Shown piece after piece: positions 2,961 through 56,600 of a stretch of 64,000 bases of DNA (position 1 is the stretch's first letter; every line of letters begins with the position of its first letter). Under the pieces are notes generated by a model, which made no database searches, had not been told where the DNA came from, and was given only the letters and a program-made list of their open reading frames with translations. Source of the DNA: Geosiphon pyriformis uo1 (Eukaryota > Fungi > Glomeromycota); assembly GCA_016748015.1 (NCBI GenBank), contig JAAOMT010000226.1, positions 1,160,604-1,224,603 on the forward strand, given 5' to 3'. The position numbers were made by a program, and so were the translations under genes.

Positions 2961-4267
2961 ATACTATGTTTTTTTAATATGTATAATATTTTAAGTCATT
3001 TATTTAAACATTAATCTTTTGACTTACAAGTTTTAAGTTAATTTTTATATTATTTTTTGTGTTTTTTAGTTTATTTTAAAGTTAGTTTTATTAAAAATTT
3101 TTTTGTTGGTGTGGTTTATGTTTTTTATAAATATGATTTATCTTTGTTAATTTTTTGTGTTCAATATTTTGTTTTTAAGATAAAATTTTAATGTTAGTGG
3201 TTTTAAGTAATTCTATCTTTTTTGAGATTTTTTATTTATTTAAATGGTTTAATGTTGTCTTTGTTAAACAGTTACATAATAAAAAAATAATATCTTTAAC
3301 TGAAAAATTTTTAAACATTAAAAAAAATTAGACTTTTATGGCTCTGTTTTTAATTGGTTTAATTCTGTTATTAAGTTTTTGATTAGTTCAAAATTTTACT
3401 TTGTTAGCTTATCTTTAGTTATTAAATCTTAGTTTTTAGATGTTTTAATTTTTATAAATTTGGTTTGGTTTATAACTAACTGTTTAATATTAATGTAATT
3501 TATTTCTTTGTTTATATTAACAGCTATTTAAACAATCTAAGTATTACTAATATAAGAACTAATACTACTGTTTTTTTTGAAAATATGAATTTAAAATTAG
3601 ATATTAAAGTGTTTGAATTGGTTTTTTCTATTATATTTAAGCTATAAGCTATTGTATTTATTTTAGAATGTGTTTTTTTTTCTGTATAATTAATTTATTT
3701 TTTAATAGCCAAGCAGTTTTAAATATATATGATTTGAAATTAAATTTGGTTTTATTAGACTTTTGTAACTATTGTTAAATTAAATACCAATATATTATAA
3801 ATATTGTTTAAAAAAAAATTTACATGTTAATTAGCACAAAATTAAAAACTATTTGGATATTTTAAACAATAAAAAAACTTATTTATTGGCTAATGTAGTT
3901 TTATTTTTAGATATAGTGTTTTTGGTTATGTATAAAAATATTTTATTAAAGTTAATAGTAAAATAATTTCGAAAAATACAAAGCATTTTGTTTATAGAGT
4001 TTTTTAGACAATCTATTTTGTTTATTAAAAAGTCAAATTTAAATTTAAAGTTTTAAAACCTAGTTTACTTGAAAATATAGATTAAATTAAATTTTTACAG
4101 ATATAACATCTTAATTTACATATGTTAGCTAAATTTATAAGCAGAGTTTTAGTTGAAACATATTCTTATTTTATGAAAGCTTTATATTATAAACTATTAA
4201 TAACTATATATAAATTTTTATATAATAGACATTATTGTAATGTTGTATGTTTGTTTTGTAAAAATGT
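2961..4267 (+). mobile_element. LINE relic 1, ORF2 RNase H region (left piece; interrupted by E and C)
   Basis: From ~3510 it reads VYINSYLNNLS...VFFENMNLKLDIKVFELVFSIIFKL*AIVFILECV, matching the RNase H of LINE relic 2 (ORF at 41723). It ends in CLFCKNV, which continues after element C. Confidence 0.8.
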
Positions 4268-5989: not shown

Positions 5990-7321
5990 TATTTCAATAA
6001 TAATAATTGGTTTCAGATCTTGTAGTATATTTTCTGATCTGATTAATAGAATGTGTGTTTTTAGTTAAGATACAAATAGCAGTAACTTTTGATTAGTATG
6101 ATAAATTTTCAGTTAATTTTCATGTACTACTTTTTTTAAAATTTTGTTTTTTAATTGTAATTTGTAAGCTTTATTGTTTAAAACTTTGTATATATAAAAT
6201 AGTTTATTTTATTTTGGGTCAAACTTTTTACTTTATTGTTTTTTAGCTTTAGTACAATATAATAATACTTTGTTTCCAATCTTAAATTTAACTGATTGGT
6301 TAGATAGATAATTGTTATGTTTTTTTTTGTTGTTTCTGAGTGTTACTAATATTGTTAGCTGTTGTTTTATAATTGTTTTCTAATGTTTTCATAAGCTAAT
6401 ATGTTTTTTGGTACAATATAGCTTCAAAATTTTTTTTAGTAATTGTTTCTGTTAGAAAAAAAAATAATTTTCATTTAATAGATAGGGTGGTTTTTCTTTT
6501 ATAAACTAATTTAAATAATGTGAACTAGGTAATATTTTGTTTTAATGTTCAGTATATATATAATACAAAAGATATAAATGAGTTCTATTTTTGTATATTT
6601 TCATAACTTATTTTTGCTAATGTTTTATACAATATTTGGTTAAATTTTTTTATCAGTCTATTTGTTTGTAAGTAGTAAGGTGAAGATAAAAGTTATTTTA
6701 TAATCCAAATTATTGGCTTAATTTAGTTAATATGCTATTAATAAAATAAATTTCTTGGTTAAATAACAATTTTTTAAACATTTATGTTGACAAATCAGAT
6801 CTTGATGCACAAATTTGGTTACTGTTTAAATATTGGCTACTTGAATAGTTCTGGTTTTACAATTACAATAATATAATAATTTTTTTTAGATGTAATTAAG
6901 AAAAGACCAACCAAATTGATTCTAATTTTATTAAATGAATTTTCAACTGAAATGGGTCAAAGTAGTTCTATGGTTCTGGCTTTTTTTCTTTATTAGCATA
7001 AGTTATAGTTGATAATATATTCAAAAATATCCTTATACATTATTAGCCAATAGTATAGATTTATTGTCTTTTCTAAAATAGTATTTTTGTTAAAGTATTC
7101 TACAGTTGGATTAGAATGCATATTATACAAAATGGTTTTTTTTTTATGACTTATTGTAAGATAGTACAGTTTTGGTATTTTCAATGATATAGTTAGTTGT
7201 TCTGAATAAAGTAATTATGAGCTTGTTTCTATATAACACTTTGTTTTTGTTGACATAATTTTTTCTTGAACTGCAATGTTAATAGATATTGGTATAATTG
7301 CTAGTAAGTGGTTATATTCAT
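5990..7321 (-). pseudogene. Integrase ORF of element C (separate ORF)
   Basis: ATG 7321-7319 (MNITTY*QLYQYL) lies 10 nt after the RNase H stop TGA (7334-7332). ORF 6993-7184 has ILYNMHSNPT of the HHCC region. Ends DLKPIIIEI*. Confidence 0.85.
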
Positions 7322-7843
7322 AGATCTGAAATCAGATTTGTATTATTTTTAACAAACTGTTAGCATTGGTATTCTTGGCTCTTTTTTTATAATATATTTT
7401 GTATGAAAATTGTTGCAGATAAGTACTTTATTGTGCATATATTTTTTTTAGCTATGACTTGCTAAATAATCAAATAAGTTTTTTGTAATCTGTATATAAA
7501 TTAAATAATTGGCAAAGATAATGTCTCCAATTTTGTATTATTCAATAAATAGTAAGATATTTCAAATCTGTTGTGTTGTATATTTTCTCTGCTGTATTAG
7601 TATTGTAACTGATATAAGTGATTAAATGTTCTCAATTGTTCAGTTTAATTTGAGACAAAATAACTTCTAGTGCATTTTTCGAAGTGTTTATAGCAATAAT
7701 AAAGCATTTATTAAAGTCTAAATAAATTAATATTGATGCTTCTATTAGATATTGTTTAAAATAATTAAAAGTTTCTTGCTGTTTTTTTCTCTATAGATAC
7801 AGAACATGTTTTAACAGCAAATAATGGAATGGTTTTGTGATGT

Positions 7844-11943: not shown

Positions 11944-12925
11944 TGTTACCAGACAAAATTAGAGATATCATTGAGCATGAAACTATCTTATAATTCTTAT
12001 CATTAATAAGCATATATTATTATTTCAAATTATCACTTATTATATTAGCAAAAATGTCCAAAATTATCATTTAATTAATAACCCAAATTGTACACAACAC
12101 AAATGTAACCTAATTGTGATGATCAATCATGCAATACCCCAAACTATGTAACATTCAAAAGTTTGTTGAAATTTATAGAAATTCGCCGAAATAATTGATA
12201 GTTCACTGAAATATCTAATAGTTCACAGAAATAACTTGTAGTTCACCGAAATGTATTTTTAGTTCAGCGAAATTGTAGAAAATAGCAAAGTTCAAGTTCA
12301 TAGAATAGTGTTACGACAAGTTGTATAAAAAGAAGAGCTTCTTTCTTTAAGAAAATGTATCTTACTTTAGATTTATCACTTAGAATCATTCCTACATACA
12401 CAAAAAAAAATAAATATCAAATAATTCGAAAAACCAAATTCTTTAATTATTGCACTTGGAAAATCCTCAAAACCCAACTAAAGTTTTGAAATTGATTAGC
12501 TACCAATTTCAATAATCTGTTAGTGACTCCAAGCCTGGATTGAAAACGTTTCCCTTGACAGAATTTTATTTCTTTTACATCTTTTTATTTTTTATTTTTT
12601 ATTTTTCTTACTATAATCATTAGGGTAGCCTACAGACAAGATTTCTGTAGAAGAGTTGACTTTCACAGCAAAGTAACTATATATTTTAGTAAGCTTCCAG
12701 ACAAGCAATTCCTGGGAAAGAGTTGACATTTACTATAATATAGCTACATAAAGTAACTGGCATGGAATTGGCCATTCCACTTATAAGCCCAGCAATTCAA
12801 ATTATAAGAGATAATTTGAAGATAAATTCAGTTACTAGAGGTTCAACCACATCTAGAAAACGTGAATTCACAGCAAACAAGCATCAACAACATTTAAGAA
12901 AAGAGACCAAAAACCTCCAGTAACA
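11944..12925 (+). repeat. 5' LTR of element B
   Basis: TGTTAC...GTAACA. ~19-20-bp AGTTCRCCGAAAT-type tandem repeats at ~12160-12275. TATAAAA at ~12324. Confidence 0.98.
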
Positions 12926-12970: not shown

Positions 12971-15900
12971 GTGGCGATCGCCTCAGACATCACAACCTTA
13001 GAGTACTATCAATCAATTTACACACACTGCAAACAACGATTTGAAATATGTGATGGAATCATAGCTTTCAAGAAAACACTTTTTCAATACATCGAAAATC
13101 GAATCAATGACTACCTCTTTGGAAACTATAACATTACAATAGTTAAAAGAGATCTTCTTGAGAACATACTACACTATTCCAATACTGAATCAGAAAACAT
13201 TAGTGCTGAAGCTTGTGCTACTTATTTTGAAGAACTTGATTATAATATTATTTGATTCTGTGAAGAAAAATATCCTGCAAACACACAATTTGTCTTTGAA
13301 CTCGAATCTGAATCTGAAACCAGTAGCAACAAAAGACAAAGAGATAACCAACCTGTTCACACAACACCCAATACTCCCAAAATATCATTCAAACATTTGC
13401 AAACACCTGAACAAGGAACCAGTTCAAAACTTCCACTTACTATCACATCTTTTCCAGCTTCACTTGCACAAGCACAAACACCTAATTCACCCTTAAATCG
13501 ATTTGCAAGACCAAAAGATTTTACATCACTCAGAAGTCCCACCAGACAACAAAAACTCCTTTAAACTAGTTCCAATCTCCTTGATTTTCTAGCTGAAAAT
13601 CATAGTGAACACTCTGAGACAGCAGCAAACAAAGAAAACAACTCTGAAATAACTGAAGAAAAATCAATAGACAGTGAAAAAGAAAAAGACGAAATGACAA
13701 CATATATCTTGACCAAGTTACTAAAGCTGGAGATGCAAATGGATGGAATGCTGCCAGAATGTTAAGAACAATTCCCTACTTTCTCAAAGGAACAGCAGGA
13801 GAATGGTTTGAAAACTTGGCTGCCCTATTCAATAATTGGAACGCTTTCAAAGCAGTCTTCCTTGAACAGTTTACTGACAATAATACCTCTATCACTCTTC
13901 ACAATTGTTTTCGAAATATCAAACAAGAACCCTCCAAATCCATTATAACTTATATTAAGAAATTCAACAAACTTCTCAGACGAATTCACCAACTTGAGAC
14001 AAACAATTATTATTCCAATGCTCAAATTTTGGATCAATTTATCGCTGGTCTAAAAGATAAACTAATTAAAAAGATTTGCCCACATGTGCCAGAAGATTTA
14101 AACTCTGTCATACAGCATGCAAAAAGATACAAAATGGCCATGGAAAAGGCCAACTGCACAAAACTTGTAAATTTGGCAATTGGAGAAACCAGCTTAGCAG
14201 CTGAGGAAAAAATTGACCAACTCACAAAGAAGGTTGAAAACTATTTCACCAATCAACAACAACAGCAACCCCAAAGATATCAACCACCCTAAAGACAAAA
14301 TCAAAATAACTTTGTACCACTTTCCAATAACCAGCCTCAGAATTGCCATTACTGTGGAATCCCTGGCCACTGAAAAAAAGATTGCAGAAAGCTACAACAA
14401 GACCAACAAAATAGGAGTAATTAACATTACCCTCCACTACAGCAATCTTATTATCAACCGCCACCATTAGCTTACTATCAACCAAGACCCCAATACCAAA
14501 ATAACTATCATCAGCCTGTCCCACAGTCAATCCCACAGCAATACCAACAACTGCTCACACAACATTGTTAAGTACCTGTTCGAAGACTGCTTACACAAAA
14601 TCAATTCACACCACAAAACCAATACCAAGCAAACAACAATAGAATCAGTTTAAACAACCAATTGGTTTCCCAAAATACCACTCAACCAAGACCCAACCAC
14701 TACCACACTCAACCCAGTTATTTAACAATGCTAAAAGAACAGGATTTTCACCATACTGCACTCTCGGAAGGTAAAGCTGCAGCACAACAACAAAACTCTT
14801 CCTATACTCTCATCACAATTCCACCAGCCAGAATTGCTGAAAATGCTAACCTTTCAGATATATTCCCTTTTGAGTTCGAAGCAAATGAGTCACTATTTTT
14901 GCTTAGCAATGCAGCCACCAATGAACAAAAAGCAATCACGGCCATGTACATTGAAGCCGAAGTCGAAAGAAAGACAATTCACTTGATCCTAGACAGTAGA
15001 TCTGCCGGAAGCATTATTACCTACCAGTTAATACAACAGTTGAAAAGAAATGTCAACTGACCAGCTCAAACAGTAATCATCACTGCTGATGACATGAAAA
15101 AGACTCCAGTAGGAGAAATTGACAATTTTCTGTTTACTCTTGATGGAATCACCATTCCAGTCAAAGTTTTTGTAATAAATGCACCCCAATACCAAGCTCT
15201 CGTTGGAAATGATTGGCTTCAAAAAGCCAATGCTAATCTGAATTGGGAAACACAAGAGTTAACAATCTCCTACCAAAGACAACACGCCTGGGTACCTGTC
15301 ATTTGTGGTACATTCAACAAATGCTCTGAAAAAGCCCCAGCTTTTGAATTCGAACTGGAAGAGGAAAAACCCCTCATTGAAACATTCATGGCTCTTGGAT
15401 CAACGTCCAACTGGGCCAATGAAACAGAACAAGAACATTTTACCCCACACTCTAAACCCGAAACCTCTAGATAGAATATCCCTTATTCAAAACCCGAACC
15501 AAGGAAACAACGCCCCTATATTCCCCTTAAATGTAAAAACTGTCACAAAAAACTATTGTCAATGGGAGCCTGCATTTCACCCAAAGAAGAATATGAAAAT
15601 CATACTTGTTATTACTGCAAGGCTTGTCACAAAGAATGATAGGGCCATCTAATAAAAAGGAGCAGAAAATGGGACAACACCTCTTGTTTGACTTGTGGAG
15701 ATATGCTACCGGAAAAATGCAATTGGATTGATGTAGCCATGAGAGAAGGAGTCTGCAATCAGACCTGCCAATATGCTTTATCAATTTCAGAAAAAGTAAA
15801 AAGAGAAACACCCTTTAATGCAGCATACAACAGTGCTTTCAACAAACTTTATCATTACCCCCATGATGCTGAAATGATTTTCGACTTAGCAATGGCATTA

Positions 15901-18525
15901 ATTAATGGAGCTACCAAAGAAGATGTTTGCCAAATGAAGGAAACAGAATACATTGAATACACCATGGAATTAGCTGGATTTAATTATGAAGACGAAGTAG
16001 AAGTCTACCACCAAATCGCAAGTCACACCTACCCAATTCAAGAAGCTCAAATTCAACAATTAGAGCAAATGAACATTAGACTATGTGAAGAATGTATTAT
16101 GTCTTGTAATGAACAGTAATGTCCTAAATGCTACACTCTTAGCATTCCCTTGCCCAGCGAAAATGATGAATACGAAATTAAATTCAGAGAACTTGAAGCA
16201 ACAGAAGAAATTGAGACAACACTTATCTATCTCATCGAAAATCAGCCTGCTTTACAACTCAAATATTTCAACAACAATGGACAAGGAATAAAACCAGAAA
16301 AAGCCCACAAGATCGATGCTGGATATGATCTAAGATATTCAGGAAAAAATACTCTTACTCTCAAACTCAAATCTCTCACAAAAATCAACCTCAAAATTGC
16401 CCTTGAAATCCCACCAGGAGCAATGGTTCAAATTGCTTCTCGATCATCCTTGGCAAGCAAAAAAATCAATGTTAGAGGAGGAATCATTGATGCTGAATAC
16501 ACAGGAGACATTACAGTCATGTTACAAAATGAAACTGATAAACTTTTCAAAATTAGATATGCTGAAAAAATTGCTCAAGCTATCTATTTACCCTTAATCA
16601 ACATTTTGGGTTTACAATTAGTTAATCAAAGAGAACAGTTGGGAAAAAGCAAAAAAGGAATGCAAGGTTTTGGTTCAACTGGATGTTTCACAGTTCCAGT
16701 AAACATAGCTCTCAATGAACAGAAAGAATCTCACCAGATTTTACAACTTCCACAACCAATTACCATTTTACCCTTTGGAGAACATCCTGAAATTTACATT
16801 TGTGAAAAGCCAACAACCACACAACAAATTTTTGAATCAAACAAACAAATCTGCTTAAAACATAATATCTTGATCCCAAACATTTATATTCCAGAAGGAA
16901 CAAAGAAAGTCCGAGTTACTTTTTACAATCCCAACAATTATCCCATAGTTTTATTAAATAACTTAGAAATTGGAATCATTCACAGTAACATATTTCAACA
17001 AGAATTACCCCAAACAATTCCCAATTTTTCTGAAATTATTGGACATTCACTACCAAAAATCAATCCAAACTCCAGCTCCAAAAACTACCATGTTGTCATG
17101 GAAAAACTATCTCAAATCAACATGGGACAACTTGAACCATAACAACAGACCCAGCTCAAAGAACTAATTGCAGAATTTGCTGATATCTTCACTGAAAACA
17201 ACAATAACTTAGGAAGAACCAATTTGGTTCAACACCAAATTTATACAGAAGATGCCAAACCAAGAAGACAATAAGCATATTGAGTTGCTCCAGAAAGCCA
17301 CCAATTTATCCGAAAAAAAGTACAATGGATGCTTAACAATAGGCTTATCCAACCATCAATGAGTCTATGGGCCTCACCAGTGGTCCTAGTTAAAAAGAAG
17401 AATGGAAAGATACGATTTTGTGTTAATTATTGACAACTTAACAGTGTTACCATTGGGAATGCTTATCCTCTTCTGCGAATTAATGACATGTTAGATGCCC
17501 TTGGAAAATCTAAATACTTTTCAACATTAGACCTAGAAAATGGATACTGACAAGTTGCCATAGATCCTAAGAACCACCCCAAAACAGCATTCACAACACA
17601 AGAAGAAAACTACGAATTCAATGTAATGCCCTTTGGATTATGCAATGTGCCAGCAACATTCCAAAGACTCATGGATGTTGTATATGCTGGACTCCTTTGG
17701 AAATCAGTAGTTGTCTATCTTGATGACACTGATGTTTATTCCCCATCTTTCGGACTTCATTTAATTTACCTGTGAGAAGTTTTTCAACAATTATGTAGAG
17801 CAGGATTAAAACTAAACATTGAAAAATGCCATTTTGGAAAAACAAGTTTGGCCTTTCTTGGTCACATAGTTAGTGAAAAAGGAGTCAAACCAGATCCAGA
17901 AAAAATCAGTGCTGTTAAGAACTTCAAAGTTCCACGAAATACTACAGAACTAAAAAGATTCATAGGATTAGCATTCTACTATTGAAAGTTTATCAAAGGA
18001 TTCTTGAAAATTGCAAAACCCCTCAACCAGCTCACCACCAAAAACGTGGAATACAAATGGACTATTGAACACCAAAAAGCTTTTGAAATTCTCAAAGAAA
18101 AACTAATAACAGCCCCAATCCTCACCTACCCGGATTTCAGCAACCGATTTCGACTAGCTACAGATGCTTTATATACTGCCTTTGGTGCCATCTTATCACA
18201 ACTAGATGACAATAGAAATGAGTGAATAATTGCTTATGCTAGCAGAACATTAAAACCAGCTAAGAAAAACTACTCTGCCACAGAACTAGAAACAGCAGCT
18301 GTAATTTGGGCCCTATACCACTTCAACTTTTATCTCAGGTCTAAAGAATTTGATATTATCACTGATAATATTGGACTCAAATAGCTTCAGAACAAAAATA
18401 CTCAGCTGAATGCAAAACAAACCCGATGGACAGGATTTCTAGCAAATTATCAATACATAGTACATCACAGACCAGAAAAACTCCACACCAATGTTGACTG
18501 TCTCTCCAGAATGAGACAAGATTAG
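12971..18525 (+). pseudogene. gag-pol: Element B ORF1: N-extension-capsid-CCHC-protease-Cys-rich domain-dUTPase-RT-RNase H
   Basis: ORF fragments 13759, 14662, 15094, 15688, 16150 and 18004 share one frame. Motifs CHYCGIPGH*KKDC, LILDSRSAGS, WASPVVLVKKK, MPFGLCN, VYLDDT, LATDAL, HTNVDCLSR. A small deletion at ~13710 shifts the frame. Ends TAG 18523-18525. Confidence 0.95.
16250..16683 (+). CDS. dut: dUTPase domain within ORF1 of element B
   Basis: All five trimeric dUTPase motifs: DAGYDL, ASRSSLA, GGIIDAEYTGDI, EKIAQA, KGMQGFGSTG. Confidence 0.95.
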
Positions 18526-18574
18526 AAAACAAAAACCAACACTCAACTTAACCAACCAAAAGAGCCAACAAACA

Positions 18575-19960
18575 ATGAATTCAGAAAACTACAACAATTT
18601 CAAACAATATTTAGAAATATTAACAATCCCAACAGATTGGTCTCCAGATAAAAAACATCAACTACAACAACAAGCCAAACAATATTTTCTACACAACAAC
18701 ATTATTTATTATCGAAATTTCAAAAACCCAAACAAACCACTCAGATTAATACAAGAACAAGAAAAAGAGACCATATTATACAACATGCACTCAAATCTTT
18801 CATCAGCACACTTCGGAAAAGATAGCACCACCCAAAGAACACTAGAATACTACTTTTGGTCTTGAATGAGAAAAAACATTCATGAATATGTTGAATCTTG
18901 TGATAGTTGTTAAAAAAGAGGAGGAACACGTCCTACTGAACCATTAAATCCAATCAAAGTTGGACAACCCTTTGACCAAGTTGGTATTGATTTAGTCGGA
19001 CCACTATCTATTACCACTCAAGGAAACCGTTATATTGTAGTAGCTGTAGATTATCTTACTAAATGGCCCGAAGCCAGAGCCATTCAAAGAGCAGATGTGA
19101 AATCAGTAGCAAATTTCATCTATGAAGACATTATTTGTAGACATGGATGTCCAATTGAACTTTTATCCGACCAGGGAACACATTTTGTGAACAACCTAAT
19201 ACAAGAAATTTGCGAACAATTCAATGTCAAAAGACCTCTGTCTTTGCCCTATCATCCACAAACAAACGGACTTGTAGAACATTTTAACAGAACATTGTGT
19301 GAGTCATTAGCCAAAGTCTCAACTGATTTTGAGCAAGAATGAGATATCTTTATTCCATCAGTGTTACTAGCATATAAAACACTAAAACAAGATACCACAA
19401 AACACACACCATTTGATTTAACTTATGGAAGGACAGCAATGCTACCAATTAAGTTCACAGTGAAAACATACCCAGCACAACCAATCAATAAAAACAATTT
19501 TTAGGAAACACTTCAATGAAGAGCCTACACTCTGTTTAGCATGTTGGAAGAAAAACAACGAATAGCAGCCACCCATATTGAAAACTCCCAAGCTCGACAA
19601 AAAAAACGGCATGATGACAAATTGCCTCCAGTTATTAATAAATTTAAAATCGGAAACAAAGTTCTCTTACACAGAACTAAAGCTGAAAAACAATGAAGTA
19701 GAAAATTTGAAAATAAATGGGATGGACTATTCTTTATCCATGAAGTTTTAGGCAACGGATCATACAAGCTAAGACTTGATAACAAAATTCTAGCAAAAGT
19801 TGCACATGAAGATCATTTGAAACACTATAATTTCAGAAACAATCCTGAACCATTAATTCCACAAATTGGTATACATTTCTCTTTAATCAATTCCGAAGAC
19901 ATTTCCCGAAATTTAGAACCAATAGTTGTCATTGAACAGCCTTCCAACTTGAACACTTAA
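18575..19960 (+). pseudogene. Element B integrase, stand-alone ORF (~460 codons, scattered stops)
   Basis: ATG 18575, in the +1 frame relative to ORF1. HHCC (MHSNLSSAH...CDSC), DDE (GIDLVGPL, SDQGTHF, GLVEHFN), GPY/F-like KWDGLFFI. Ends LEPIVVIEQPSNLNT* at 19960. No chromodomain. Confidence 0.93.
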
Positions 19961-20081
19961 TTTAAATTAATTATTATAGTTATCTTCTTATAATTTAGAA
20001 ACAATCTCACAAAAACAAAACAAAAATAACATAAAAACCCATGCACCAAAAATAATTTTCTTTTATTTCAAATTGCTTATA

Positions 20082-20819
20082 ATGACTATTCCTCAAAACA
20101 TTCAACAATTATCCCAAAAACTAATGTTAGCTTTAAAAACAATACCTGAATTATCCATTACTGTTACTGGAAACCACATTAATTATACCCAAACAGAAGT
20201 AGTTACAAATTTAGCCCCAAATTCATGAAAATATCACCCGTATAAAAAGAACATAAGAAGTTATACTGGAATTCACCTGCCAGAACTTTTAAAGCTTGCT
20301 TTAAGAGAAAATCTAATGCTCACTCTGATTAGTATTCCACCAAATGCTACAATTTAACAAAGACTTCAACTGTGTTTCAATGAAGAAAACACTGAATATC
20401 CTCCAATCTATAGATATTTTCACATTGGAAAAACACTCTACGAATGGAAACTGGAACTTACAACAGCAAACCTCACAAAAGAAGCTATTTAGAAACAACT
20501 CCACAATGAATTCAAGACAATAGCTGGATCAACAAACAGTCGCTACAGGCTCAGAGCTGCTCTTAGAATTTATAACCTATTCCACACCTGTGAAAACATA
20601 CTACAAAACCCAATTTTTCAACCTTTGAAGATTCAATACATTGGAAAGCTCACAGAACTGAAATTTCAACAATTTTCAGACCAAATTTCTTCAATAATTT
20701 TGGATTATTATCTGGAAATAACAAACAGTACTTGGACTTCGACGGAGCTCAGTCTTGAGGAGAAGGTTATGTTACCAGACAAAATTAGAGATATCATTGA
20801 ACATGAAACTATCTTATAA
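20082..20819 (+). pseudogene. Element B ORF3 (~245 codons, unknown function), runs through the PPT into the 3' LTR
   Basis: ATG 20082 is in frame with track ORF 20625-20819. Only three internal stops, each explicable by a transition. Homologous relics in C and D. Confidence 0.8.
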
Positions 20820-21751
20820 TTCTTATCATTAATAAGCATATATTATCATTTCAAATTATCACTTATTACATTAGCAAAAATGTCCAAAATTATCATTTAA
20901 TTAATAACCCAAATTGTACACAACACAAATATAACCTAATTGTGATGATCAATCATGCAATACCTCAAACTATGTAACATTTAAAAGTTCGCTGAAATTT
21001 ATAAAAATTCGCCGAAATAATTGATAATTTACCAAAATATCTAATAGTTCGCAGAAATAACTTGTAGTTCACTGAAATGTATCTTTAGTTCAGCAAAATT
21101 GTAGAAAATAGCAAAGTTCAAGTTCATAGAATAGTGTTACAACAAGTTGTATAAAAAGAAGAACTTCTTTCTTCGAGAAAATGTATCTTACTTTAGATTT
21201 ATTACTTAGAACCATTCCTACACACACAAAAAGAAATAAATATCAAATAATTCGAAAAACCAAATTCTTTAATTATTGCACTTGGAAAATCCTCAAAACC
21301 CAACTAAAGTTTTGAAATTGATTAGCTACCAATTTCAATAATTTGTTAGTGACTCCAAGCCTGGATTGAAAACGTTTCCCTTGACAGAATTTTATTTCTT
21401 TTACATCTTTTTATTTTTTTTCTTTTATTTTTCTTACTATAATCATTAGGGTAGCCTACAGACAAGATTTCTGTAGAAGAGTTGACTTTCACAGCAAAGT
21501 AACTATATATTTTAGTAAGCTTCCAGACAAGCAATTCCTGGGAAAGAGTTGACATTTACTACAATGTAGCTACATAAAGTAACTGGCATGGAATTGGCCA
21601 TTCCACTTATAAGCCCAGCAATTCAAATTATAAGAGATAATTTGAAGATAAATTCAGTTACTAGAGGTTCAACCACATCCAGAAAACGTGAATTCACAGC
21701 AAACAAGCATTGACAACATTTAAAAAAAGAGACCAAAAACCTCCAGTAACA
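20770..21751 (+). repeat. 3' LTR of element B
   Basis: Direct repeat of 11944-12925. Confidence 0.98.
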
Positions 21752-21755
21752 CTGT

Positions 21756-24748
21756 CCATGCATCATTAAATGCTTTGAAAGACCAAAATGAGTTGAAAAA
21801 TGGGATAATGAGCCATGCTTGACTTGTGGTGAAACTTTTCTTGATGAAAAAATGTGGAATAACATTTCTGGGAGAGAAAGAACATGTAACAAATCATGTT
21901 AGTACATGATTCTTATAAGTAACTGGGTAAAAAAAAATGCCCATAGATGCTGTCTGAAAACAAGCAGTCAAACACTTGAATGGATGTCCACATAATGATG
22001 ACAAAATTTGGCAAATGGCTCTTGCCAAAATCAAAGGAGCATTACCAGAAGAAATAAAGATGATCAAAAATAATCCTCCCAAGTCCATTAAACTTGACTA
22101 AGACCCAGAGCCAGTCATAAATCTCCTGGATCCAGAACAATTCTATGAACACTACCAGGAATTAACACCCACTAGAGAGGAACAAGAGCAATGGTTGGAA
22201 GAAATAAATACAAAACTATGTGACTTTCAATATTGTAATGAGTGTGATCTCATTTACAATTTACCAATCTGCATGATCTACACAATCCCAAATGAGAAAG
22301 AACCAATCAGCAGCTGCACATCAAAATTGGAATCAACTTTCAATCTTGATTCAAACTCCAACAATAATGACAATGAAAACAATGATTCCAGTTCTGTTCA
22401 ATATGACAATAAAAAATATAGTAATTCAGACTCCGATTTAAATTCCGAAAAATACATCACACTCCCTGATCTCACCAAGGAACAAGAACTTAAATAATTC
22501 AATGATAATAATGAAGATATTATGCCAGAACTCGTGCATGATACTAATGCAAAGTTTGATCTGAGATATCCAAAAAAAGATCTCATCAAATTAAAACCCC
22601 ATTTACGCACCTGCATTGATCTTAAAATAGCACTAGAAATTCCAGCAACAACAATGGTTCAGTTAGCATCTAGAAGTAGCTTAGCCAAAAAGGGAATCAA
22701 ACATCAGAGGAGGAATAATTAATACAGGATACATAGAAAATATTATTGCTATGCTATAAAATAACTTGGAAAAAGCATATACTATAGATCTAAACAAAAA
22801 GATAATACAAGCAATATTTTTACTTTTGGTAAAAATAGCTCAATTAGTATTAGTGAAAAACAGGGAAGAATTAAAGATCATAGCTAGAGGGATATAAGGA
22901 TTCAGATCTACAGATAGAATAGATATACAGGTTAATATGGCAGAGGAAAAAATTATTAACAAGGAAGAAATTATCTCCACTCATTAACAAATTTCTATTC
23001 CATCATATGACTAGTATATGGTAGTCATAGAGAGAAAAATAAGGGATCAGGTTCAAATTTTTAAGGCAAAAGCAACACTTTGTGAATCAGGAGAGATTAG
23101 ATTAGTCAATCTACACATACCAGCTAAGAACCACAGTCACATCAAAATTCCCATTTACAACAATATGGGAAACATTATCAAGATACTGGAAGGAACCACC
23201 ATTAGATACTTGACTATTGAAATTGAAGAACAACCACCAAACCTTATTCCAGACTTTCCACAATTGTGTGGATATGTGAATATCACATCATAAACAATAT
23301 ATAAACGAGAAAAATGTTATCTGCTCCAACCAGAACAATTGGAACAAATAAACTTGGAAAACTTAAACCCACTTTAATAGATGCAACTCAAGATGTTACT
23401 CAACAATTTCAATGACATTTTCGCCAGCAAAAATGAATTTGGCAGAACTGATATTATTCAACACCAAATCAAGACTGGAGATACAATGCCAATTAAGCAG
23501 AGAGCATACAAAATACCACCAGCTAGCCATGAGATCATTCATCAAGAAATCAATCAAATGCTTAACAACAGACTAATTCAGCCATTAATAAGTCTATGGT
23601 CATCACCAGTGGTACTAGTTTATAAGAAGAATGGAAAAATCCACTTTTGTGTAAATTACTGAAAACTAAATAGAGTAACAAAAGGAGACAGTTACCCAAC
23701 TCCAAAGATCCAAGAACTTTTTGATGCTTTTGAAAGAAAGAAATGGTTCTCAACTTTAGACTTAAACAGTAGTTACTGGCAAGTAGCCATGAAACCAGAA
23801 GACAAAGAGAAAACGGCTTTTACAACTCAAAAAAAAAACTTTGAATTTGAAGTAATGCTATTTGGCTTAATGAATGCTCCAGTCATTTTTCAGTGACTTA
23901 TGGAAATTGTTTATACTGGGCTACTATGGAAATCAGTAGTCATATACTTGGATAACACCAATATGTTCTCGAAAACATCTGATAATTATTTATATCATCT
24001 CCAACAAATGTTTAAAAGACTAAGAAGAGCTGGATTAAAGCTAAATACAACCAAATGCTTCTTTAGAAAAACAAAACTCAAGTTTTTGGAACATGTAGTA
24101 AGCAAAGATGATATCAAAACAGATCCAGATAAAATTGCAATAGTAAAGAACTTTTCAGTACCAACCAACTTGACAGAACTAAAAGCATTTTTGGGATTTA
24201 CAGGCTACTATTGCTGCTTTATTAAAGACTTCTTGAAATTAGCTTAGCCACTCCATTATTTACAAACCAAGAATGTGAAGTACGAATGGACAGAAGCCCA
24301 ACAAGAAGCTTTCAACATATTAAGAAAAAAGCTTTTACAAGCTCTAGTATTAATGTATCCAGATCACAACAAACTATTCATCATTATTACTGATACATTA
24401 GACCAAGCCTTAGGAGCAGTACTATTACAAAGAGGACCAAACAAAAGAGAGCATCCAGTAGTTTATGCCAGTAGAAGCTTAAGTTCAATTAAAAAGAACT
24501 ATGGAACTCCAGCACTGGAACACTTAGCTATCTATTGGGCTGTCATCAAATGGAAAGAATATTTGAGTCAAAAGTTTGACATATACACTAATCACAAAGG
24601 ATTGACTTTAATTTAGAAACAAAAATTTGGAGATGATTGCCATGCCAGATGGAAAATAGAACTTTTATTATTTAATTATACAGTACATTATAAAAAAGGA
24701 AAAGACAATAGAAATGCTGATGGTTTGTTGTGAATGAAACAGATCTAA
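21756..24748 (+). pseudogene. pol: Element A ORF1, 3' half: Cys-rich domain, dUTPase (~22500-22920), RT, RNase H
   Basis: KWDNEPCLTCG; AKFDLRYP...ASRSSLAKKG; WSSPVVLVYKK; VIYLDNT; HPVVYASRSL. Ends NADGLL*MKQI* (TAA 24746-24748). Confidence 0.93.
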
Positions 24749-24778
24749 AAACATTTCAACCCAAAAATATAACAAAAG

Positions 24779-26040
24779 ATAAATATACAAAAATACTAAC
24801 AACTCCAATATTATATAAATATCCAATTGTTCAAGAAAAAATTATTTCAAAAGGAACAAAACAACATCAAACAACAATCAAAATATTTTATCAATTACCA
24901 AAATATACTTTACCAGAAAAACAAAAAAAATCCAGATCAACCAACCAGAATAATCACAGAACCAGAGAAAGAAACAATATTGTTCAATATGCATTCGGAT
25001 CCAACAACAGGACATTTTAATAAAGAAGCAATCATAGAAAAAACTAGAAAAAGATACTATTGGCTATCAATATATCCAGACATTATCCAATATGTTTAAA
25101 ATTGTAATGCTTGTCAAAAAAGAGGAGGAACAAAACCCAGTGAATTATTGAGACCAATTAAAGTAGGACAACCATTCAATTGTATTGGAATTGACTTAGT
25201 TGGACCATTAACAATTACCAGTAAAGGCAATAGATATATTGTAGTAGCTATGGACTATCTCACCAAATGGCCAGAAGCAAAAACCATTCAAAGAGTAGAT
25301 GCAGAATTCATTGCCGAATTCATTCATCAAGATTTGATCTGTCAACATAGATGTTTAAAAAAATTGTTATCTGATCAAGGAACTTACTTTGTGAATAGAA
25401 CATTTACAGAATTGAGTCAAAGATTTGGGATAAAAAGACCATTATTATTATCATACCATTTACAAACAAATGAATTAGTTGAAAGATTTAACAGAACATT
25501 GTGTGAAGCAATCACCAAGATCAGTTAAGAAAACCAGGACAAATAGGATTTGTTTATATCATCAGTATTATTTGCTTATTGAACAATAAAGCAAAACACT
25601 ATACAAACAACACTATTTAAATTAGTATACAGTAGAACAGCAATATTACCAATGGAAATAGAAGTTAACACTTATCCAACAGAACCAATAACTGAAGACA
25701 ATTTGCAGGAAACATTGCTAAAAAAAACATATGACTTGATGGAAACACTAGAAAACAAACAATGAAAAGCAGCTGATAACATTCAAAAGTCACAAGAAAA
25801 ACAAAAAAACAATATAATAACAAATTACCAGATAAACCAGTTGAATTCAAAATTGGGGACAAAGTACTTCTATATTATACTAAAACAAAAAAACAATGGA
25901 ATAGAAAATTTGACCCCAAATAGAATGGATCATTTCACATAGAAGAAATTCTTAGAAATGGAGCTTATAAATTAAAATGAGACAACAAAATCTTAGCCAA
26001 AGCAGCACATAGTGATTGACTGAAATCATATCATCATAAT
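24779..26040 (+). pseudogene. Element A integrase (separate ORF; start decayed to ATA; C-terminus deleted)
   Basis: MHSDPTTGHF...CNAC; GIDLVGPL; DYLTKWPEA; SDQGTYF; LVERFNRTL. Confidence 0.9.
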
Positions 26041-53600: not shown

Positions 53601-56600
53601 CCAAGTTATGGATTTGTTATTTGATTTGAGATCCCAAATAATTACTTGTAACACCAGTATATATTAACTATAGAGAGAAAAGTGAAAGATCAACTTCAGA
53701 TTTTTAAAGTAGACTCTACTATTTGTAAATCAAAAAAAATTGTCATTACCAATTTTTATATACTAGCCAAAAACCATAAACATATCAAAATTTCAATACA
53801 CAACACAATTAAAGATCTAATAAAAATACCAAATGGAACTAACATCAAATACTTAAGCACTAAAGTTGAAAATCAAGTATTAATTACTATTTTAAACTTT
53901 TCACAACTGTGTAAATATATGAACATCATATTATAAACAATTTACAAACAAAAAAAATATTATTTGCTATAATTTAAATAATTGAAGCAAATAAACTTAA
54001 AAAATTTAGATTCACTTTAATGTATACAACTTACTACTTAAAAATTTTATCAACATTTTTGCAAGTAAAAATGAATTTGGCAAAACTGATATTATTTAGC
54101 ATCAAATTAAAATTAAAAATATAATACCAATCAAGCAAAGAGCATATTAAGTATTATTTGTTAGTTATAAAATCATTTGTCAAAAAATTAACCATATGTT
54201 AAACAATAAATTAATTCAATTATCAATGAATCTATAATTATTATTAGTAGTACTTATTCAGAAAAAAAATAAAAAGATCTATTTTTGTGTAGATTATAAA
54301 AAACTCAACAATATTACTTATAAAAACAGTTATTCAACTCCATAAATCTAAAAACTATTCGATGCTTTTAGAGAAAAAAAATGGTTTTTAATATTAAATT
54401 TAGATAATAATTACTAACAAGTAGCCATGAATTCACTTAACAAGAAAAAAATAGTATTTACCACAAAAAAAGTGAACTTTGAATTTAATGTTATGTCTTT
54501 TGGCTTAACCAATACTCCAGCTATCTTTCAATAATTAATAAAAATTGTCTACACTGGATTATTATGAAAATCAGTAATAATCTACTTGAATAATACCAAT
54601 GTATTTTCTAAAACTTTTAATAACTATCTTCATTATCTTCAACAAATGTTTAAAAAATTAAAAAAAGCCAGATTAAAATTAAATACTATCAAATACTTCT
54701 TTGGAAAAACAAAATTCAAGTTTTTGAGACATATTATAAGCAAAGATAATATTAAAACAGATCCAGACAAAATTGAAATAGTTAAGAACTTTCTAGTATT
54801 AATAAACTTAACAAAACTAAAAACATTCTTGGAATTTGCTAAATACTATTGCTGTTTTATCCAAAATTTCTTCAAACTGGCTTAATTATTTTACCAGCTT
54901 TAAGCAAAAAACATTAAATATAAATGAACAGAAAATTAATAAGAAGTTTTTAACATATTAAAAAAAAAGCTTATTCAAGCTCTAGTATTAATCTATTTAC
55001 ACAACAAATTATTTATTATTACTACTAATACATCCAGTTAAGTCTTAAAAACAGTATTATTACAAAAAAAAACTAATGAATGAGAATATTTAGTGGTATA
55101 TGCCAACTGAAGTTTAAGTTTAGCTAAAAAAAATTATAAAACTTTAGCACTAAAACACTTAGCTATCTATTGAACTATTATTAAATAAAAAGAATACTTA
55201 AGTCAAAAATTTAATATATATATTAATTACAAAGAGTTGACATTAATTTAAAAACAAAAATTTGAAGATAATTGTTATATAAGATAAAAAATAGAACTAT
55301 TAATATTTAATTATATAGTACATTATAAAAAAGAAAAAAAAATAGAAATACTAATGATTTGTTACAAATAAAACAAATTTAAAAACATTTTAACTTAAAA
55401 ATATAACAAAAAATAAATACACAAAAATATCAACAACTTCAATATTATATTAATACTCAATAATTCAAGAAAAAATTATCTCAAAAAAAACAAAACAATA
55501 TAAAACAATAATCAAAATACTTTATTACTTATAAAAATATATTATATTGAAAAAACAAAAAAAATTCAGAACAGCCATTCAAAATAATCATAGAATCAGA
55601 AAAAAAACAATACTATTCAATATGAATTCAATAGCAAAATATTTTCATAAAGAAGTAATTATGGAAAAAACCAGAAAAAAATATTATTGGCCATTAATAT
55701 ATCCAGATATTATTTAATACATTCAAAATTGTAATGCTTATTAAAGAAAAAAAAACAAAACTCAGTGAATTACTAAGACCAATTAAAGTGGAACAACTAT
55801 TTGATCAAATTAAAATTGACTTAGTTAGACTATTAACTATAATTAGTAAAGACAATTAATACATAACAGTAATTATAAATTATCTTACAAAATAACCAAA
55901 AACCAAAGCAATTCTAAGAGCAAATGCAGAATTTGTAGCCAAATTTATATATTAAAATTTGATTTATCAATATGAATGTCTAAAAAAATTGTTATTAAAC
56001 CAAAGAACTTACTTTGTAAACAAAATATTGACAGAATTAAATCAAAAATTTAGAGTTAAGAGACTATTATTATCATCATATTACTTATAAACAAATAGTT
56101 TAATTAAAAAATTCAATGAAACATTGTGTAAAACAATAGCCAAAATTAGCCAAAAAAACCAAAATAAATAAAATTTATTTATATTATTAATATTATTTGC
56201 TTATTAGACAATAAAACAAGATACTACATAAACAATATTATTTGAACTAGTTTATAGTAAAACAGCAATATTATCAGTTGAAATAGAATCAATACATATC
56301 TAATTGAACCAATAACAGAAGCCAATTTTTAAAAAATATTGTTAAGAAAAACATATGACTTAATAAAAACTTTAGAAAACAAAAAATAAAAAACAGCTGA
56401 TAATATACAAAAGTCACAAGAAAAACAAAAAATATAATATAATAACCAGTTATCAAATAAACCAACCAAATTCAAAATTGGAAACAAAATACTTTTATAT
56501 TATACCAAAGTAAAAAAATTATAAAGTAGAAAGTTTGATTTTAAATAGAATAGTCTATTTTATATTAAAGAAATTTAAGATAAAACAATAAAATCTTAGC

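Follow-up and report, generated by a model that had tools for sequence, protein, structure and literature searches.

In LTR retrotransposons the integrase (IN) is normally cleaved from Pol by the protease of the element, and in the textbook scheme it enters the particle as the tail of Gag-Pol, in an amount set by the Gag:Gag-Pol ratio. Precedents for recoding are the GAG3-POL3 junction of Ty3 (+1 frameshift), retroviral -1 frameshifting and gag-pol of MLV (readthrough), and in the plant Ty3/gypsy elements of the Ogre/Tat type the stops of pol between protease and RT are removed as an intron by splicing. Stand-alone gypsy-type integrases are known from the Ginger DNA transposons, which have terminal inverted repeats and no RT, and from the domesticated GIN genes. 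The Caulimoviridae, plant pararetroviruses related to the Metaviridae, have a polycistronic pregenomic RNA with closely spaced or AUGA-overlapping ORFs; they lack both integrase and LTRs, and for reinitiation they rely on a viral transactivator (TAV). Stop-restart translation occurs in victoriviruses (CP/RdRp, AUGA), in the hypovirus CHV1 (ORF A/B, UAAUG), in caliciviruses (VP1/VP2) and in influenza B virus (M1/BM2), where it relies on a defined upstream RNA element (TURBS or pseudoknot), and fungal ribosomes carry it out for mycoviruses. After an ORF of about 1,600 codons reinitiation is normally inefficient, and a helper element is required. In the full-text literature searched (Repbase and subscription journals being outside its reach), neither an LTR retrotransposon with a separately encoded IN nor termination-reinitiation in such an element was found described. 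Here we describe elements of the glomeromycote Geosiphon pyriformis in which, judging from sequence comparison, the integrase is very probably an independent cistron with its own conserved AUG and not the tail of the Pol polyprotein.

The RNase H-integrase junction in the window

The window, a stretch of 64,000 nt from contig JAAOMT010000226.1, contains four elements of this kind, A to D, of which B serves as the reference copy (Table 1). The LTR pair of element B is 95% identical over 300 nt, and its Pfam matches follow the Ty3/gypsy order gag-PR-RT-RNase H-IN, with Integrase_H2C2 and rve matched in the integrase cistron; for the protease there is no Pfam match in B, and one is present in the related contig L064. 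ORF1 of this copy is interrupted by private decay stops and terminates at a fixed TAG, and its IN cistron contains six private decay stops. The reading before the stop is NVDCLSRMRQD-TAG in B, MKQI-TAA in A, IKQI-TAA in D and IIQI-TGA in C, and IN begins with MNSENY in B and MNITTY in C; A and B share 65% identity in the IN core. Relative to ORF1, IN lies in frame +1 in B (49-nt spacer) and C (10 nt), and in frame 0 in A and D (30 nt each). All stop and start positions that the earlier note had given for the four elements proved correct on re-checking, as did its spacer lengths and frame relations.

Table 1. Split elements of the window (positions counted from its first letter) and junctions of related contigs
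Feature	Position	Strand	Remark
5' LTR, element B (at least this part)	11944..12243	+	direct repeat with 20770-21069
3' LTR, element B (at least this part)	20770..21069	+	direct repeat with 11944-12243
ORF1, element B	13678..18525	+	gag, (protease), Cys-rich region, dUTPase, RT, RNase H in a single frame
Retrotrans_gag/Ty3_capsid match, element B	13678..14289	+	Pfam
dUTPase match, element B ORF1	16120..17139	+	Pfam
RVT_1 match, element B ORF1	17551..17772	+	Pfam
RT_RNaseH_2 match, element B ORF1	17986..18222	+	Pfam
Fixed ORF1 stop TAG, element B	18523..18525	+	4 codons past the RNase H ...DCLSR motif
Intercistronic spacer, element B	18526..18574	+	49 nt, A/C-rich (A29 C15 G2 T3), without ATG
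Integrase cistron, element B	18575..19960	+	461 codons and TAA
Junction, element A	24746..24781	+	TAA 24746, second in-frame TAA 24770, IN start ATA at 24779
Junction, element D	55380..55415	+	TAA 55380, second in-frame TAA, IN start ATA at 55413
Junction, element C	7319..7334	-	TGA (7334-7332), 10-nt spacer, IN ATG (7321-7319)
Junction, L061			38-nt spacer
Junction, L062 (Paraglomus brasilianum)			372-nt spacer
Junction, L063 (Paraglomus occultum)			205-nt spacer
Junction, L064			114-nt spacer
Junction, L065			ORF1 end TAA TAG TAA, then 28 nt
Junction, L067/L068			AUGA overlap (-4 nt)

Families B and A/D were analysed by per-codon tallies across genomic copies, and the evidence on family C comes from a pattern search only. 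The junction TAG of family B is present in 29 of 29 further copies (30 of 30 with the window copy) and the IN ATG in 29 of 30; the true end of IN, the TAA at 19958, is kept in 28 of 29, comparable to the junction TAG. In contrast, the window copy has 15 other in-frame stops, none of which recurs as a stop in more than 14 of the 29 copies; the same ceiling holds for each stop within 16600-18522 of ORF1 and for every other stop-prone codon of the family, the changes being mostly CGA>TGA and TGG>TGA/TAG. These stops are polymorphic products of CpG decay. In family A/D the junction TAA and a second in-frame TAA, 21 nt further, are each found in all 16 copies, and since 12 of the 16 have ATG at the IN start, the ATA of A and D represents a decayed ATG. 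A stop (TAA, TGA or TAG) stands at the junction codon in 10 of 11 matches of the genome pattern search for family C. No continuous RNase H-IN frame, the finding that by the earlier note would have spoken against a separate integrase gene, occurs among the 46 copies of families B and A/D; its suggestions that the pattern goes beyond random decay and that the ATA starts of A and D are decayed are borne out by these counts. The idea that TAG, TGA and TAA arose as separate G>A decays of a conserved TGG was rejected, because the stop is fixed family-wide and intact relatives have a stop there too.

Three spacer lengths occur in family B (49 nt, 19 copies; 51 nt, 9 copies; 52 nt, 2 copies), and therefore the frame relation varies even inside one family, the 49-nt (+1) and the 51-nt (frame 0) variants each being present in many copies. 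The tallies show that the stop and the predicted IN AUG were already in the master copies of the window's families. All 60 copies sampled from the Geosiphon genome are decayed; we infer activity with the split layout from the copy number and from the intact relatives elsewhere.

Intact relatives and selection on the integrase

Intact split elements were found in Paraglomus brasilianum, in P. occultum and on metagenome or run-assembly contigs, so that the layout, which the earlier note had proposed to look for in other Glomeromycota, is present there in undecayed form. In these relatives the RT-RNase H ORF ends and is followed by an intact IN ORF of 413-576 aa, which starts from the homologous Met with the motif M-[DN]-x-x-x-Y (in its longer form M-[DN]-x-x-x-Y-x-x-[LI]-x-x-Y-L). 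The succession of RT-RH ORF, stop and intact IN ORF is seen in six of the seven contexts; on the remaining contig, L066, an IN ORF is present without RT-RH upstream. Among the relatives the shortest spacer is -4 nt (AUGA overlap) and the longest 372 nt, IN occurs in any frame, and these comparisons show the frame relation between ORF1 and the predicted IN cistron to be irrelevant. The earlier note had the stop at the same codon throughout, which holds for the window's families; in the wider clade ORF1 stops anywhere from 4 to about 310 residues beyond the LSR motif, and the feature conserved clade-wide is the IN start and not the stop. Moreover, a phmmer search of the full library with the family-B IN piece yielded about 24 clusters of stand-alone IN (by representatives at 50% identity) among the best 150 hits, most of them 413-437 aa long and with residue 1 aligned with the Met of B, and conversely residue 1 of the B integrase aligns with residue 1 of the intact stand-alone IN proteins. 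One cluster, P0054, has ten 437-aa members on different contigs.

The earlier note had described the element as tricistronic. An ORF does lie close behind IN in L061, L064, L066 and L067, and to this extent the description stands; these ORF3s are dissimilar, with no blastp or tblastn match among lineages or to the window and no significant Pfam family match of their products, and L062 and L065 have gag in an ORF of its own as well, which makes four cistrons (gag, pol, IN and a further ORF). Gene callers label split INs as 'hypothetical proteins' of the host, with examples among the annotations of Paraglomus and Geosiphon. TE classifiers built around a single pol ORF may likewise rate split-IN elements as defective.

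Between A and B, dN/dS is about 0.32 in IN and 0.29 in RT-RH, values which show, at the level of codon comparison, that IN is under purifying selection with a constraint equal to that on RT-RNase H. One clade of the IN tree (SH-aLRT 99) takes in 24 of the 25 split INs. The classical single-ORF elements P0088 (on L070) and P0089 (on L069) lie inside the same clade, and therefore either gain or loss of the split happened on more than one occasion, or the clade contains the root. Candidate matches in this genome number in the thousands, and relatives occur in at least four Glomeromycota genera; the Ty3/gypsy group with split IN is a large, old and successful one in arbuscular-mycorrhizal fungi. 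Its significance is that such a lineage keeps IN under selection as a separate gene, contrary to the textbook scheme.

Possible routes of integrase expression

We propose that these elements are a dUTPase-carrying Ty3/gypsy LTR lineage whose pol would be cut at the linker between RNase H and integrase: ORF1 (gag-PR-dUTPase-RT-RH) would be terminated by a true stop codon, and IN would be translated from its own conserved AUG, instead of being set free from a Pol polyprotein by the protease. The need for a separate means of expressing IN, as the earlier note held, follows from the fixed stop together with the intact split relatives. In elements with short spacers (from the overlap to 51 nt, the window's four included), ribosomes may end ORF1 on the full-length RNA and then resume, most likely by reinitiating at the IN AUG; this termination-reinitiation route is put forward tentatively for the short-spacer elements, with not quite an even chance of being the right one. 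In this group the IN AUG comes after an unstructured A/C-rich spacer, and wherever the spacer measures 51 nt or less no other AUG precedes it past the stop. The IN AUG follows the stop closely in L067 (-4 nt, with AUGA and UGAUG stop-start overlaps), C (10 nt), L065 (28 nt), A and D (30 nt), L061 (38 nt) and B (49-52 nt), the 10- to 52-nt spacers of the latter five being without ATG, and it lies farther away in L062, L063 and L064. Against reinitiation stand the length of ORF1, about 1,600 codons, and the result of MFE folding, which found no significant RNA structure upstream of the junctions (z -1.8 to +1.6; pseudoknots and rRNA complementarity are outside this test). Leaky scanning to the IN AUG was also considered and was rejected because ORF1 contains 13-79 ATGs, about as many as expected, and so is not depleted in AUG.

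Reinitiation is a poor match for the two Paraglomus spacers, which are 205 and 372 nt long and contain 3-8 AUGs ahead of that of IN; they speak instead for the possibility that IN is a separate cistron on a subgenomic mRNA of its own, started at a promoter inside the element, within the spacer or ahead of it, or else made by joining a spliced 5' leader to an acceptor immediately before the IN AUG, like retroviral env. In both of these spacers a TATA-like motif (AAAATATATAAAGG and AAAATATAAATA) stands some 55-85 nt 5' of the IN AUG, the interval being free of AUG, and the words GGGTTAG and GGCGATA are common to the two. In addition, B, A, C and L061 have an AG a short way before the AUG, and IN and ORF3 are so tightly linked that one mRNA could serve both. 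However, DNA as AT-rich as this should contain TATA-like and AG strings by chance, and the elements with short spacers or overlaps would need a promoter or an acceptor inside the RNase H coding sequence. On this evidence a subgenomic mRNA may be considered a serious possibility, if somewhat short of a probable one; it is a rival to the expression route only and not to the independence of the cistron. Routes other than reinitiation or a subgenomic mRNA would be clearly unlikely from the layouts at hand.

Fusion of RH and IN by programmed recoding, that is, a +1 or -1 frameshift or stop readthrough at their border, appears very improbable. It could draw on B with the 49-nt spacer, C, L061 and L067, in which the IN frame is open for 21-75 nt 5' of the AUG and overlaps the end of ORF1, and on the 51-nt variant of B, where the TAG is the only in-frame barrier and simple readthrough would be possible. 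Yet the required shift differs among relatives (+1, +1, -1, -1, 0), even within family B, and in six of ten elements no single recoding event joins the ORFs, since the IN frame does not stay open as far as ORF1 or several stops in frame separate the two. In these six (A, D, L062, L063, L064 and L065) the IN frame closes 6-75 nt 5' of the AUG, short of ORF1, and recoding is excluded by 2-14 in-frame stops or by the closed frame, the triple stop at the end of ORF1 in L065 being a case in point. Moreover, MFE folding found no stimulatory structure, and Met is kept as residue 1 among clusters of at most 50% identity, which a fusion would not require. The IN frame is thus not of the kind used in programmed recoding, open up to the recoding site and without a start of its own, and as a general mechanism recoding is refuted by the compared junctions.

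A still remoter reading takes the stop as a shared defect of non-autonomous families that use IN in trans, their own IN ORF being a decaying relic. Every sampled copy from this genome is indeed decayed, and one founder with a nonsense mutation could fix a stop in one family. But the split is common to at least four diverged families here and to intact elements in other genera, dN/dS of IN is the same as that of RT-RH, full-length intact IN ORFs exist in many clusters such as P0054, and the start Met is conserved, so that this reading is already contradicted. The least credible proposal is a short intron over the stop whose splicing would restore the RH-IN frame, as in Ogre: short introns are numerous in Glomeromycota, and some family-A copies have a GT within the ...GGTTTGTC... 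codons that might serve it together with an AG before the ATG, but this GT is not conserved among A copies, splicing there would delete the conserved LSR motif, spacers of -4, 10 and 28 nt are too short to hold an intron, and spacer lengths are not constrained to preserve the frame.

If IN is an independent cistron, it would reach the reverse-transcribed DNA without carriage inside Gag-Pol, perhaps bound to some component of the particle, or perhaps by encountering the cDNA once uncoating has taken place, and its amount could be set independently of that of RT. A wider and somewhat unlikely proposal extends translation from a polycistronic RNA to an entire clade of eukaryotic LTR retrotransposons, with gag, pol, IN and ORF3 read in turn by termination-coupled reinitiation and the free IN recruited in trans to the particle or cDNA by protein-protein contacts. 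Were this true, the dosage and packaging of IN would be uncoupled from Gag-Pol, and the elements could plausibly be an intermediate stage on the way to free-standing integrase genes, such as those of Ginger transposases or the GIN genes of hosts. They offer a natural system for asking how a free integrase locates cDNA, whether a very long ORF in cellular (non-viral) RNA can be followed by reinitiation of eukaryotic ribosomes, and how stand-alone integrase genes originate.

Comparison with known systems

The split elements share with classical Ty3/gypsy elements (Metaviridae) the LTRs, the Ty3-type capsid gag, the order PR-RT-RNase H-IN and an IN with H2C2 and rve domains. Even the start of IN has a classical counterpart, as the single ORF of P0089 contains the same M-x-x-D-Y-L-x-x-x-x-N-Y-L helix 11 residues past LSR. 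The difference is that the classical IN is the C-terminal part of the polyprotein, whereas in the split elements a stop, a non-coding spacer and an AUG of its own precede it; IN is thus not found within Pol or Gag-Pol as a domain for release by protease. The Ogre/Tat elements are similar in that conserved stops interrupt pol in otherwise functional families. Here, however, the interruption is at the RNase H/IN border, an overlap of 4 nt is possible, a conserved Met comes next, and no conserved GT...AG spans the stops. With Ginger and GIN the elements have in common a gypsy-type integrase as a free-standing protein; in contrast to Ginger, IN lies directly behind RT-RNase H and inside LTRs, so the elements do not belong there. 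As in the Caulimoviridae, a reverse-transcribing element is organised as a chain of ORFs, most fully in L062 and L065 with gag, pol, IN and a further ORF all separate, although no TAV-like protein was found here, the ORF3 products having no significant Pfam match. The viral stop-restart systems differ in their upstream RNA element, of which none was detected here, and the Paraglomus spacers are too long for them; the likeness is in the junction itself, where the stop is near or overlaps the next start, with AUGA and UGAUG in L067 and 10-51 nt without AUG in the window's families.

Junction of ORF1 and integrase in the window elements

The layout claimed earlier, in which the gag-to-RNase H (RH) frame (ORF1) stops and integrase (IN) then opens with its own start codon, checks out at its coordinates for all four diverged Ty3/gypsy elements of the window (A, B, D and, on the minus strand, C), with A, C and D arranged as B is (see the table). 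The window has a G+C content of 24%, and the closest named database proteins to the family-B IN piece are from Geosiphon pyriformis itself (89%, 79% and 64% identity).

The earlier note asked for a test of whether the ORF1 stop and the IN ATG are fixed, and this was answered by per-codon tallies over copies found in the genome (128.3 Mb in 792 contigs). Among 30 aligned family-B copies (86–94% identical over 3.9 kb, all in-frame stops tallied), the junction TAG is present in 29/29 copies other than that of the window, the IN-terminal stop in 28/29 and the IN ATG in 29/30, whereas none of the window copy's 15 internal stops recurs as a stop in more than 13 of the 29 others, and the most stop-prone other codons are stops in up to 14/29. 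For elements A and D, counted as one family, the first TAA and a second in-frame TAA 21 nt downstream both occur in 16/16 copies, the IN start being ATG in 12 copies and ATA in four, and a genome pattern search for family C gave a stop at the junction codon in 10 of 11 matches. By these counts the junction stop and the IN start were both features of the master copies and not damage. That the three stop types are independent G>A decays of one Trp codon is unsupported by the tallies. Nearly all stop variants in family B (window 16600–19960 and copies L002–L030) are CGA>TGA/CAA or TGG>TGA/TAG, a C>T/G>A pattern, largely at CpG, that is the mark of deamination at CpG and adjacent sites; loss of methylated CpG by deamination is thereby suggested over random mutation.

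The family-B spacer between stop and start is 49 nt in 19 copies (IN in +1), 51 nt in nine (frame 0) and 52 nt in two, and IN of A and D is in frame 0 relative to ORF1. As the 49- and 51-nt variants are both present in many copies, the family-B lineage kept transposing after the frame change. The frame relation between ORF1 and IN does not matter.

Features of element B and of the stand-alone IN loci outside the genome
Element or locus	Source	Feature, or ORF before IN	Position	Spacer (nt)	IN	After IN
B	window	direct repeats, 95% identical	11944-12243 and 20770-21069			
B	window	single frame, in order gag (Retrotrans_gag/Ty3_capsid), Cys-rich stretch, dUTPase, RT, RNase H				
B	window	ORF1 end, NVDCLSRMRQD-TAG	18523			
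B	window	IN, Integrase_H2C2 and rve domains	ATG 18575, TAA 19958	49	461 codons	
L061	metagenome	ORF ending ...NNADALSRLPKQQ-TAA		38	427 aa, intact	ORF3 29 nt after
L062	Paraglomus brasilianum	gag, then dUTPase-RT-RH		372	437 aa	
L063	P. occultum	dUTPase-RT-RH		205	430 aa	
L064	metagenome	PR-RT-RH and 310-aa Cys-rich tail		114	415 aa	ORF3 5 nt after
L065	metagenome	gag, then RT-RH with TAA TAG TAA end		28	576 aa	
L066	metagenome	no RT-RH within 1.6 kb upstream				
L067/L068	sequencing-run assembly (Logan)	dUTPase-RT-RH, stop overlaps IN start (AUGA)	L067:1679-1682	-4		
L067/L068	sequencing-run assembly (Logan)	IN stop/ORF3 start, UGAUG	L067:2946-2952			ORF3 overlapping

Relatives outside the genome and their phylogeny

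Using as phmmer query a 347-residue natural open stretch of one family-B copy (Met at residue 21) against 1.84 billion cluster representatives, we found, in the top 150 hits, some 24 stand-alone proteins, most of 413–437 aa, whose residue 1 aligns at query residue 21–25 and whose N-terminus reads M-[DN]-x-x-x-Y-x-x-[LI]-x-x-Y-L; their sources include P. brasilianum, P. occultum and Cetraspora pellucida. The flanking DNA was read for seven of these loci, and their comparison shows conservation of the IN start throughout the clade, with the ORF1 stop falling 4 to ~310 residues past the LSR motif near the RH end. The same layout, an RT-RH stop followed by an IN ORF, thus recurs in other Glomeromycota, namely P. 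brasilianum and P. occultum.

In element B (16120–17139), both Paraglomus elements and L067 (46% G+C), a dUTPase domain separates protease from RT. This domain is a mark of the lineage that has the split integrase. In L062 and L065 a separate gag ORF precedes the PR/dUTPase-RT-RH ORF without overlap or frameshift site, across a non-coding gap of 528 nt (2688–3215) and 275 nt (3341–3615), respectively, giving four cistrons. Pfam gave no match for the Cys/His-rich extension after RNase H in L064 (2220–3155, ~310 residues), in the ORF preceding IN; this extension may be a relative of the Cys-rich region of element B at 15520–16150. L066 (1–4163) holds an intact 413-aa IN ORF of the same clade and, 18 nt downstream, an unannotated 415-aa ORF; a rearranged element, another type of element and a captured gene are all conceivable readings of this locus. 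An ORF region follows IN closely in element B (19980–20820) and likewise in L061, L064, L066 and L067, the products showing no detectable similarity among these four loci or to the window, and at the sensitivity used 'ORF3' is a positional label, not a conserved family.

In an unrooted maximum-likelihood tree of the IN core (139 sequences, with gene-model fusions possible among the 'polyprotein' rows), one 51-row clade (SH-aLRT 99) takes in 24 of the 25 'split' rows, and the remaining 88 rows are almost all polyproteins. Two members of this clade, P0088 and P0089, are true single-ORF gag-pol elements, each continuous on its own contig, with the LSR motif, a 10–30-residue linker and then the same helix as in the split INs (P0089 reads LSR-YSIPESLLTEC-MSIDYLHLIFNYL), so that the linker between the RH and IN domains is precisely where the cut lies. 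For the pair of window copies A and B, IN has a dN/dS of 0.43/1.34 and RT-RH one of 0.43/1.48, post-insertion decay inflating both values; the outside elements, which are intact, have reached saturation at synonymous sites with their ORFs still open.

Possible routes of integrase expression

With recoding, splicing and leaky scanning set aside, initiation at the IN AUG remains. Reinitiation at this AUG after ORF1 termination would fit, as no AUG precedes that of IN in any spacer of up to 51 nt, and these spacers are unstructured, A/C-rich and nearly without G and U (B: A29 C15 G2 T3; L061: A25 C11 G2 T0). The AUGA and UGAUG overlaps in L067, of a kind characteristic of mycoviral stop-restart, point the same way. 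The ORF1-IN junctions showed no significant RNA structure. Translation of IN from a subgenomic mRNA would also fit. The long Paraglomus spacers contain 3–8 AUGs, and a TATA-like motif stands in them 55–85 nt ahead of the IN AUG, the stretch from motif to start being free of other AUGs. The two spacers (L062:6540–6656 and L063:8880–9000) also have the words GGGTTAG and GGCGATA in common, and motif and words together may represent an internal promoter.

Recoding as a general route is blocked in A, D, L062, L063, L064 and L065, where the IN frame either closes 6–75 nt before the AUG, short of ORF1, or carries 2–14 in-frame stops; where the IN frame overlaps ORF1, the shift needed is +1 in C and the 49-nt variant of family B and -1 in L061 and L067. 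An intron across the stop is rejected on spacers of -4, 10 and 28 nt and the lack of a conserved GT, and leaky scanning on an ATG count in ORF1 equal to expectation.

Comparison with known systems

The reading of IN as a separate gene, put forward in the earlier note, is supported by the fixed stop and start in the copies and by the split relatives elsewhere. The split-IN elements are an old group that is under selection and has spread widely in Glomeromycota. Searches of open full-text papers and preprints (Repbase and subscription journals lay outside this scope) turned up no account of an LTR retrotransposon whose IN is separately encoded, and a recent survey of transposable elements in arbuscular mycorrhizal fungi nowhere mentions integrase. 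The elements have all the defining features of Ty3/gypsy but one, since IN lies outside the polyprotein. The nearest analogies for IN expression, each of which differs, are stop-restart translation as known from mycoviruses and caliciviruses, caulimovirus polycistronic RNA and the spliced pol interruption of plant Ogre elements.
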